Shown here one piece after another: positions 58,001-61,000 of a stretch of DNA of 64,000 nt (position 1 is the stretch's first letter; every line of letters begins with the position of its first letter). The DNA is from Glycera tridactyla. Taxonomy: Eukaryota. Below the pieces are notes generated by a model. The model did no database searches, had not been told where the DNA came from, and saw only the letters and a list, made by a program, of their open reading frames with translations. Where the stretch lies: the NCBI GenBank assembly GCA_965644265.1, contig OZ286465.1, positions 33,480,001 through 33,544,000 on the forward strand, read 5' to 3'. The position numbers were made by a program, and so were the translations under genes.

Positions 58001-61000
58001 CGTGTTGGTGAGAGAAATTGATTTTGTGGGTACAAAATGTACCTGTGTTGGGAGGAGATATCTGGTTCTCNNNNNNNNNNNNNNNNNNNNNNNNNNNNNN
58101 NNNNNNNNNNNNNNNNNNNNNNNNNNNNNNNNNNNNNNNNNNNNNNNNNNNNNNNNNNNNNNNNNNNNNNNNNNNNNNNNNNNNNNNNNNNNNNNNNNNN
58201 NNNNNNNNNNNNNNNNNNNNNNNNNNNNNNNNNNNNNNNNNNNNNNNNNNNNNNNNGTGTGCGTGACATTACTGACCTTGAATCTGAATGCTGCCAACTT
58301 GAGTATGAACTCAATCGTGAAGACACCGGTGAAGATCATGTTCAAATAGTCCAAAGCCTGTGAGTACTCGGGACTTTGACCATAATACTGAAAGCAACCA
58401 GAGTCAAGCCAGGTTCAAAGCAAAACCACGCGTCACATACCTTGAATTTTAAGGCAGCCAGTTTGAGAATGAACTCAACTGTGAAGACGCCTGTGAAGAT
58501 CATATTAAGTATATCCAGAGCATTCTTGTACTCATCGCTTGATCCGTGATACTGAAAATCAGAGGCCCAGGATGATAGAAATTATTCTCCGCGCCACCAC
58601 ACACAAACACACACGCATACTTCAAAATTATCTATTTTTATGAATAGTGATGAATGTGTCAATATATGGAAGATGTGAAATGAGACGTTTTTATGTGAAC
58701 ACCAAAAATTAAAAAAATGAAACACACACACACACAATACTGATATAAAACTTGAACAAACACTGTTCCTTTTTAATTTTTACCCTCATCCATGCTGTTC
58801 ATGATATCTATAATATCTGAACCTTCCTAGACAGATCTTTCCATGGATATAAAATGGGTGTATTACATATAAATCTGCTCAAACACTTTACTGCGGGTCT
58901 CTGTATGACTAATTCCGCTATTGTGTAGGAATCACACTATGCGTCTGTAATATAAACAGCAGCAATGTCGACTCTAACCACAGGCCAACATGTTCTTGGT
59001 TGGTTGGTTCTGGTTCAACGTCACATCAGCACCCTCTGTGCTATATTGTGACGCCCATGCAATGGACATGGGTGGGATCTTCCAAGGCCCCCTACTTCTG
59101 GGTCCCAAACAGAAGGTGAAAGTTTATGAAATCCACAGTCACTCAAGGCGTCATTTGCCAACATGTCCAAGTATTTGAGCAATTCCCAAAATCATTAACT
59201 GAATAAAATGAATTGGTTGAATAACACAGGAAACATTTTCAGGAATGTGAGTGAATGGAGCCAAAAGTAAATGATTGATCAATTGGGTGGAGTTAGATGA
59301 CACATATCAACTCAAAGGATTGCATATGGCAGATGTCCCAGAACTTTGAGAACCATCTTGAATGACAGGATATATGTTCTGAACAAGGGGACTTTATTCT
59401 TTTCAGAAACAGGTTCAACTGATTGTGGCATTAATTTCTGAAAGAATGGGGATTGGGGCAGAATAACCGATATATATGGCCTGAGGAGGTTGATGAAGGT
59501 TGAGGAATTTCAATATAAATCCATCTTCACAGCTGGATGAGAACTACTTTTTGGAGATGAGCTACGAGAAAGGTTTCATTCCTATCTGCATCATAATTTC
59601 GGGCGATACCTGAAATCGCGAAACTTTATCTGCTAACTCTTTTTTGATGCCTGGTACATGCTTGCTGGGATGGCCCGTCCTTCTTTTCAGGTGCAAGCGG
59701 GAGCATGATATAATAGGCTACATCAAAAAATGTGTTTGAATAATGCTTACAGAGTTGTTCTGATTTTGCTATGAAAATGAAGTCATCTATGTAATGATAT
59801 ATGTTGGTAATGCTTTTTTTCTCATTTCTGAGGGCACATCCATATAGTAGTAAATTACCGGGAAGGTGTGCCTTATAAATCATATGCTATTGATCAATCA
59901 ATTCATTGATTGAGTGTGTAGTGCATAACATCATGTCAACTCTGATAGGAATATATGAGTCAGAAGCAATGGGTCAGATTTTAAACATATTGTGTAAATG
60001 ATATTTCACTAGAAAAAAATCCCTTTTTTTGTGGGGTGTATTCATTCTTTATGTTTTCCTGAGGTCTGCAAAATCCTACATGCATAATCTTGAAGGTTGT
60101 TTCTGAAGCAATCTTCATATTTTCATGGACATTCTCATTATATTTTTAACACTGCATCATCACATATTGAAAAAACTTTCTATTGCCTATACAGTGAAAA
60201 CTGTGATGAGAGACCCTGCGACAGGAGACCGTTTTCCCAGGGCAGCTTTTTTATTTGACACAGTCAAATATACCTCCGACGAGAGGCCACCGTCTTTGAT
60301 GCACCGCCTTTTGACGACATTTGAGGTGGTCTCCCTCACAGGTTCCACTGTATCTAACAATCAAATTTAAGATCTGTACCAATCATTTTGGTTGTGATAG
60401 TATTGTTACTATTAATCAATGAACGCTACTGTTAAAATCTCTCAACTGGTGAAGGCATGTTACTGGGTAGGAAAGTGGAAACAAGCAGTGAGTTGGGTTC
60501 TTGGTAAGGGATTAAAAAGGCAGATCGAAAAAGCGGGACAAACCGCAGACAGCACATTTCTGTTAATGATAATCAAATCGTAACTGAAGAGCCAAGTTTA
60601 CTCCCATGACAAGGGAGATGATTTGGCTGTTAGAGAAATCATGCCGAGAGAATGGAAGTGCATTAATGGCTTTTGCTCCTGCTTCTGCCAACAAACTATT
60701 CCGTAGTCGAGATGTTTGAAAGTGTGGCAGTCCATGTGACTTCTAGCTGATATTTCACCCATTTCCAACCCTCATGAATCAAATCCTCTTCAAGTTCATC
60801 TAAGAACAATCCAGAATTCACAGAATCTAATCAACACGTCTCATGGGATAACACAAGACAATATGCTATGCAAAACCCCGGAGCAATGTCAGCGGGTAGG
60901 ACATGGTGATGAGTCCTGACATAGTGAATCCAGAGTAAAGACACTGGAACTGAAGTTCATCTTCCCAATTTGAATAAATATTCTTTTACAAAAGGCCAGT

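Follow-up and report, generated by a model that had tools for sequence, protein, structure and literature searches.

Tandem IVS2 exons, probably mutually exclusive, in a Cav1 calcium channel gene of Glycera tridactyla

A calcium channel gene of Glycera tridactyla carries two tandem copies of the exon that encodes the S1-S2 loop and the S2 helix of domain IV. Our data suggest that these copies, exon A upstream and exon B downstream, are probably mutually exclusive exons of a single Cav1 gene, that their joining to each other would be blocked sterically, and that together with a second exon pair at IVS3 they would supply four versions of one voltage sensor. In assembled RNA contigs, both exons were spliced into RNA, each without the other, at a depth below 3. 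Of the gene, the window analyzed (64,000 nt) includes only the portion between IIIS6 and the C-terminus, with domains I to III falling outside. The features on which the reading is built are listed below by their positions in the window.

63158-63000, minus strand: IVS1 exon (end of the III-IV linker plus IVS1), constitutive and upstream; 159 nt, phase 0, ends in ..TLAMK, donor gtgagt
58551-58441, minus strand: exon A, IVS1-S2 loop plus IVS2; from the sequence, a phmmer match to Cav1 IVS2 and an RNA contig
58440-58388, minus strand: intron between the copies, 53 nt; from the sequence
58407-58403, minus strand: predicted TTGAC branch-like motif, its A at 58404; from a pattern scan
58387-58277, minus strand: exon B, IVS1-S2 loop plus IVS2; from the sequence and an RNA contig
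53295-53212, minus strand: IVS3 exon copy a, DPWN type; 84 nt, phase 0 start
52296-52213, minus strand: IVS3 exon copy b, DAWN type; 84 nt, phase 0 start

The original prediction described two intact 111-nt, phase-0 exons, 53 nt apart and with 28/37 identical residues. Re-reading the sequence reproduced this exactly. Each exon holds 37 codons, and the copies agree at 76% of residues and at 78/111 nt, the other 33/111 nt being different. Both are preceded by a ..ttcag acceptor; the donor is gtatgt after exon A and gtcagt after exon B, and the intron that separates them (GTATGT..TTTCAG) is exactly 53 nt long. All flanking junctions, those of the IVS1 exon, A, B and both IVS3 exons, are in phase 0. 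With equal length and phase, and with AG acceptors and GT donors intact, the copies have the features that define a tandem-duplicate exon pair. The next exons downstream, IVS3 a and b, form a second pair of the alternative type, 84 nt each. A 186-nt run of N (58071-58256) starts 21 nt past the exon B donor and hides the proximal part of the next intron. Just upstream of the exon A acceptor, (TG)n/(CA)n microsatellites occupy 58598-58640 and 58710-58738.

The residue differences were also as first listed, nine in total. Five fall in the S1-S2 loop (H/Y, S/Q, D/P, K/S, and N/Q), which reads HGSSDEYKN in exon A and YGQSPEYSQ in exon B. The remaining four are I/Y at residue 14, V/I at 25, L/F at 34, and K/R at 35. 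The I/Y change sits two residues ahead of the S2 outer polar site and V/I adjoins the inner glutamate, while L/F and K/R lie at the cytoplasmic end of S2, where the exons terminate in ..AALKFK (A) and ..AAFRFK (B). Both copies share the S2 spacing N16-x6-F23-x2-E26-x3-K30. With NavAb N49/F56/E59/R63 as the guide, these four match the outer polar site, the gating phenylalanine, the inner acidic site, and the basic residue of S2. All four are identical in A and B. As the counter-charge positions are thus the same in both copies, any effect on gating would have to come from neighboring residues or from the loop.

Judged by its best matches and by its IQ motif, the gene is that of a Cav1 (L-type) calcium channel alpha-1 subunit. 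Exon A matched best to IVS2 of the solved Cav1.3 (E 6e-11) and Cav1.2 (to 3e-10) structures, and both copies matched IVS2 of these channels at E of about 1e-10. By sequence comparison, the match of the doublet to Cav1 IVS2 is not due to chance. The IVS1 exon corresponds to Cav1.3 residues 1173-1224 (phmmer, E 1e-16), with Cav1.2 following and Cav2.x behind, and residues 4-35 of exon A correspond to Cav1.3 residues 1229-1260. Because these matches run in order on Cav1.3, the exons are colinear with the solved channel, which accommodates a single IVS2 segment between IVS1 and IVS3. A canonical IQ calmodulin-binding motif is encoded downstream on the minus strand, in an open segment at 7054-6860. 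Within the genome of the animal itself (2.04 Gb, 207 contigs), the only matches to exon A were these two copies, which therefore represent one locus, neither two paralogues nor a haplotype duplicate.

Substitutions between the copies were counted by class. Synonymous differences affected 17.5 of 22.5 sites (pS 0.78, saturated) and non-synonymous differences 15.5 of 88.5 sites (pN 0.175); in 14 codons the change was synonymous only. A saturated pS against a low pN indicates that the duplication is old and that both copies have been kept as coding sequence by purifying selection.

To follow the exons in RNA we relied on Logan contigs, for which the run type was guessed. Contigs of three runs from one 2023 study (X1-X3) were mapped on positions 57200-63199. 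Save for high-copy repeats, they cover exons and not introns, so these runs behave as RNA. One X1 contig (record 1; 227 nt, depth 2.8) contains a piece that maps exactly to exon B, 58277-58387, with one mismatch, preceded by 53 extra letters and followed by 63. The mean X1 depth in the 63000-63199 bin is 0.74, which equals 53 x 2.8 / 200, and that in the exon A bin (58400-58599) is 0. From these bin depths the contig is read as IVS1 exon, then B, then a downstream exon, with A skipped; the IVS1-to-B joint was obtained by depth arithmetic and not read directly, as repeat rows dominated the junction tables. One X2 contig (record 9; 162 nt, depth 2.6) maps to exon A, 58441-58552, with two mismatches, and continues for 50 letters past the exon A donor. 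X2 depth in the exon B bin is 0, so this donor was joined to something other than B. In X3, record 24 lies on the IVS1 exon (63029-63161) and then runs into other sequence.

The X1 and X2 contigs gave no depth on the 53-nt intron beyond the exon pieces. Among six words sampled from exon A, four were present in X2, two in X3, and five in X10 and X11, two runs of a study other than that of X1-X3. X1 held none of them; its seven words from a search with the stretch therefore belong to exon B. No A-B junction was seen in the contigs, which have a depth below 3 and drop rare forms, among which occasional double inclusion or double skipping may fall.

Elsewhere in the mapped region, contig depths summed over X1-X3 ran into the thousands to tens of thousands at three intronic stretches (58996-59100, 60250-60300, and 62290-62470), with many variant contigs and internal rearrangements. 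These stretches are high-copy interspersed repeats, transcribed or carried in many transcripts. The microsatellites beside exon A attract unrelated contigs in the same mapping.

The original prediction had asked for junctions from the IVS1 exon to either copy, and would have been undermined if only one copy were ever spliced. On contigs, this check returned B without A and A without B, and each copy was present in spliced contigs. Its wider claim, that the copies are mutually exclusive variants of voltage-sensor IV, holds as far as each exon is used without the other and both are conserved at the protein level, while strict exclusivity is a presumption from few contigs of depth below 3.

These data bear on two other readings of the doublet. 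In the first, one copy matters and the other, most likely the diverged exon A, is decaying or spliced at noise level without a distinct function. The single-copy exons of other species are indeed closer to B (75-86%) than to A (59-76%), and one exon suffices in eleven other sampled lineages. However, exon A still has an open frame, intact splice sites, and all conserved positions of S2 despite saturated synonymous sites, and it occurs in spliced contigs of runs from two studies, so that we regard its decay as highly unlikely. In the second, mRNAs regularly contain both A and B, or the doublet was created by assembly. We find this barely credible. A length of 111 nt, being a multiple of three, would keep A+B in frame, but joint inclusion would place a second S2 helix in the protein and reverse the membrane orientation of the remainder of domain IV, whereas solved Cav1 channels leave space for exactly one segment between IVS1 and IVS3. 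Moreover, the X1 and X2 contigs each hold one copy without the other, and the 33 nucleotide differences rule out a collapsed or duplicated assembly.

Mutually exclusive use of A and B is thus the reading that we favor, and a mechanism can be proposed for it. Each mRNA would carry one copy, A or B, between its IVS1 and IVS3 sequences, giving two channel forms that would differ in nine residues of voltage-sensor domain IV. Joining of A to B would be blocked, as about 36 nt from the exon A donor to the only branch-like site would be too tight for the U1 and U2 complexes to bind together. An mRNA with both copies would remain in frame, encode one more transmembrane helix, and lie beyond the reach of nonsense-mediated decay: both exons are 111 nt (3 x 37), divisible by three, and decay cannot remove an in-frame A+B mRNA. 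As decay could not police double inclusion, a physical block would be expected as a safeguard. Combined with the choice between IVS3 a and b, the pair would yield up to four versions of voltage-sensor IV from one gene.

The spacing within the short intron agrees with this proposal. A branch-like ttgac about 36 nt from the donor had been pointed out in the original prediction, and our pattern scan found TTGAC as the sole yUnAy match in the 53-nt intron, making it the predicted branch point. Measured from its A, the donor is 36 nt away and the intron's 3' end 16 nt away. The distance from donor to predicted branch is below the 50-nt criterion, which is a human one and may not be the host's. For human mutually exclusive exons, the steric class is conventionally defined by fewer than 50 nt between donor and branch, a condition that applies to 9% of clusters (PMC5740500). 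In C. elegans, five exon clusters have intervening introns too short for excision, all with exons of 3n length, and the minimum intron is about 40 nt (PMC4165533). Tubulin gene fragments from the Glycera genome had gaps of about 340 nt or more, a figure that sets no intron minimum. Other introns in the window are kilobases long. The gene has a second doublet with a very short intron, two pre-IQ exon copies at 21340-21100 on the minus strand, separated by a 41-nt GT..AG intron.

Introns of 40-55 nt are spliced in some invertebrates. The copies may accordingly be true alternative exons whose exclusivity is not steric, with a 53-nt intron that can be spliced and a choice made by tissue-specific splicing factors or competing RNA structures. 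A doublet in a bryozoan-like genome (contig L007), with an 82-nt intron in which candidate branch sites reach a donor distance of 65 nt, favors exclusivity of this kind, as does the minimum intron of only about 40 nt in C. elegans (PMC4165533). Against it, no inverted repeats linking the Glycera doublet to its flanks were found, with the proviso that the 186 nt of N past the exon B donor could hide such an element, and RNA folding of the doublet region was nothing unusual (z -1.47). With neither repeats nor unusual folding, there is no sign of pairing of the docking/selector type. The occurrence of 53-nt and 41-nt doublet introns among kilobase introns is, in addition, the pattern that steric enforcement predicts. 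We therefore consider non-steric exclusivity unlikely.

Steric exclusion appears to be the likeliest mechanism, given a branch point that is itself predicted. The steric block put forward in the original prediction gained one branch-like motif at 36 nt, to be set against a predicted branch, a mammalian threshold, and the 82-nt intron of the bryozoan-like doublet. The last suggests that short spacing is not a general requirement for such doublets.

To place the doublet among other animals, a profile of A and B was searched, returning 572 proteins at E up to 0.001. Its short matches were mostly open frames across the IVS2 exon in genomic contigs of many animals, and contigs were examined for twelve profile matches. 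Searching proteins with exon A extended by three codons at either end gave one candidate. The comparison of genomes that the original prediction had called for thus placed the doublet in the Glycera genome and in the bryozoan-like genome, and one IVS2 exon in eleven other sampled lineages, three of which have an IVS1 exon 94-96% identical. The contigs, grouped by IVS1 identity, were as follows.

L005, L009, L017: IVS1 identity 94-96%; one IVS2 exon; 9.6 kb or more on each side; IVS3 a/b present
L018: IVS1 identity 92%; one IVS2 exon; 7.5-kb contig
L013, L006: IVS1 identity 89%; one IVS2 exon; IVS3 a/b present
L007, L008: IVS1 identity 88%; two IVS2 exons, at 7355-7465 and 7548-7658 of L007; 82-nt intron
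L019: IVS1 identity 85%; one IVS2 exon; one IVS3 exon only
L001-L004, L010, L011, L016: IVS1 identity varies or exon not on the contig; one IVS2 exon; short contigs

The L007/L008 doublet shares lineage-specific residues with a Bugula neritina fragment, and its source is on this ground probably a bryozoan. In L007 (Logan SRR25569789), branch candidates lie 42-65 nt from the donor, and the locus has one IVS3 exon only. The two L007 copies differ at 24 of their first 63 nucleotides and at 3 of their last 48, a pattern that suggests partial homogenization. The near-identity at the 3' end is compatible with partial gene conversion or with RNA-level constraint. The Glycera and L007 doublets are alike in having ALDILNM in the upstream and ALDYLNM in the downstream copy. 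In a tree of the 37 residues, a common origin of the two doublets was not separated and the position of the A branch was not placed. Altogether, only some lineages carry the doublet, which probably has more than one origin.

The IVS3 pair, in comparison, is widespread, with both copies in L005, L009, L017, L013, and L006; the IVS3b protein is 100% identical in L005, L006, L009, and L019. Between Glycera and L005 (15752-16505), the DNA of IVS3 a and b is unusually conserved (pS 0.27 and 0.31), and the IVS1 exon beside the pair is saturated (pS 0.84). This hints that the IVS3 pair may be under RNA-level constraint, for example from splicing control. In L006 (Logan SRR23372216, 1439-1708), the IVS1 and IVS2 exons form one continuous exon, as they do in many arthropod fragments. 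The intron ahead of the Glycera doublet is therefore not universal. In a region search with full-length fly Cav1, the 120 matches listed were all from insects, and among them none concerned annelid isoforms.

A broader reading, which we advance tentatively and hold to be possible but doubtful, is that the IVS2 exon was duplicated independently in at least two lophotrochozoan lineages, one annelid-like and one bryozoan-like, each time with Ile upstream and Tyr downstream. Together with the older IVS3 pair, the copies would then form a combinatorial, four-version voltage-sensor IV that tunes L-type activation in animals with a single Cav1 gene.

In vertebrate Cav1 channels, voltage-sensor IV sets the voltage and kinetics of activation, and splice variation within it, at exon 29 of Cav1.1 and exons 31/32 of Cav1.2, has large effects on gating. 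With the Glycera doublet, nine residues would be exchanged naturally, and the S2 partners of the gating charges would stay as they are. The pair could show how the S1-S2 loop and second-shell residues of S2 tune gating. Where an invertebrate has a single Cav1 gene, channel diversity must come from splicing, and a gene with three exon doublets (IVS2, IVS3, and pre-IQ) would be a compact example of it. The short-intron doublets of the Glycera genome would also be well suited to measuring the limit of steric exclusion in this species.

Exchange of a voltage-sensor helix through mutually exclusive exons is familiar from IIIS2 and IVS3 of vertebrate Cav1.2 and from Nav channels, and steric exclusion is an established splicing mechanism. 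Within CACNA1C, which encodes Cav1.2, the pairs are exons 21/22 for IIIS2 and 31/32 for IVS3. Mutually exclusive exons of CACNA1C are named in PMC5740500 and PMC5059693. Both the kind of exon and the mechanism proposed here are thus known; for alternative IVS2 exons in any Cav1 gene we found no earlier report in the literature. The Glycera doublet resembles the CACNA1C 21/22 and 31/32 pairs in being tandem exons of the same length that would swap one voltage-sensor helix of an L-type channel, and the IVS3 pair recurs in the Glycera gene at the same 84-nt size. Unlike in CACNA1C, the duplicated helix is S2 of domain IV. The IVS2 pair also differs from the widespread IVS3 pair in being found in some lineages only, where one sensor would thereby gain a second switch.

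The very short intron, with a predicted branch near the donor, recalls exons 2/3 of alpha-tropomyosin and, in C. elegans, egl-15 5A/5B and let-2 9/10. As in exons of the steric type (PMC4165533, PMC5740500), lengths are multiples of three and mRNA decay cannot police double inclusion. Two differences stand beside this likeness: the Glycera branch point is predicted from sequence, and the 53-nt intron is longer than the 14-nt and 30-nt introns of C. elegans. The closest parallel in architecture lies within the gene itself, where the pre-IQ pair is likewise a tandem copy of one exon, the two doublets having introns of 41-53 nt.
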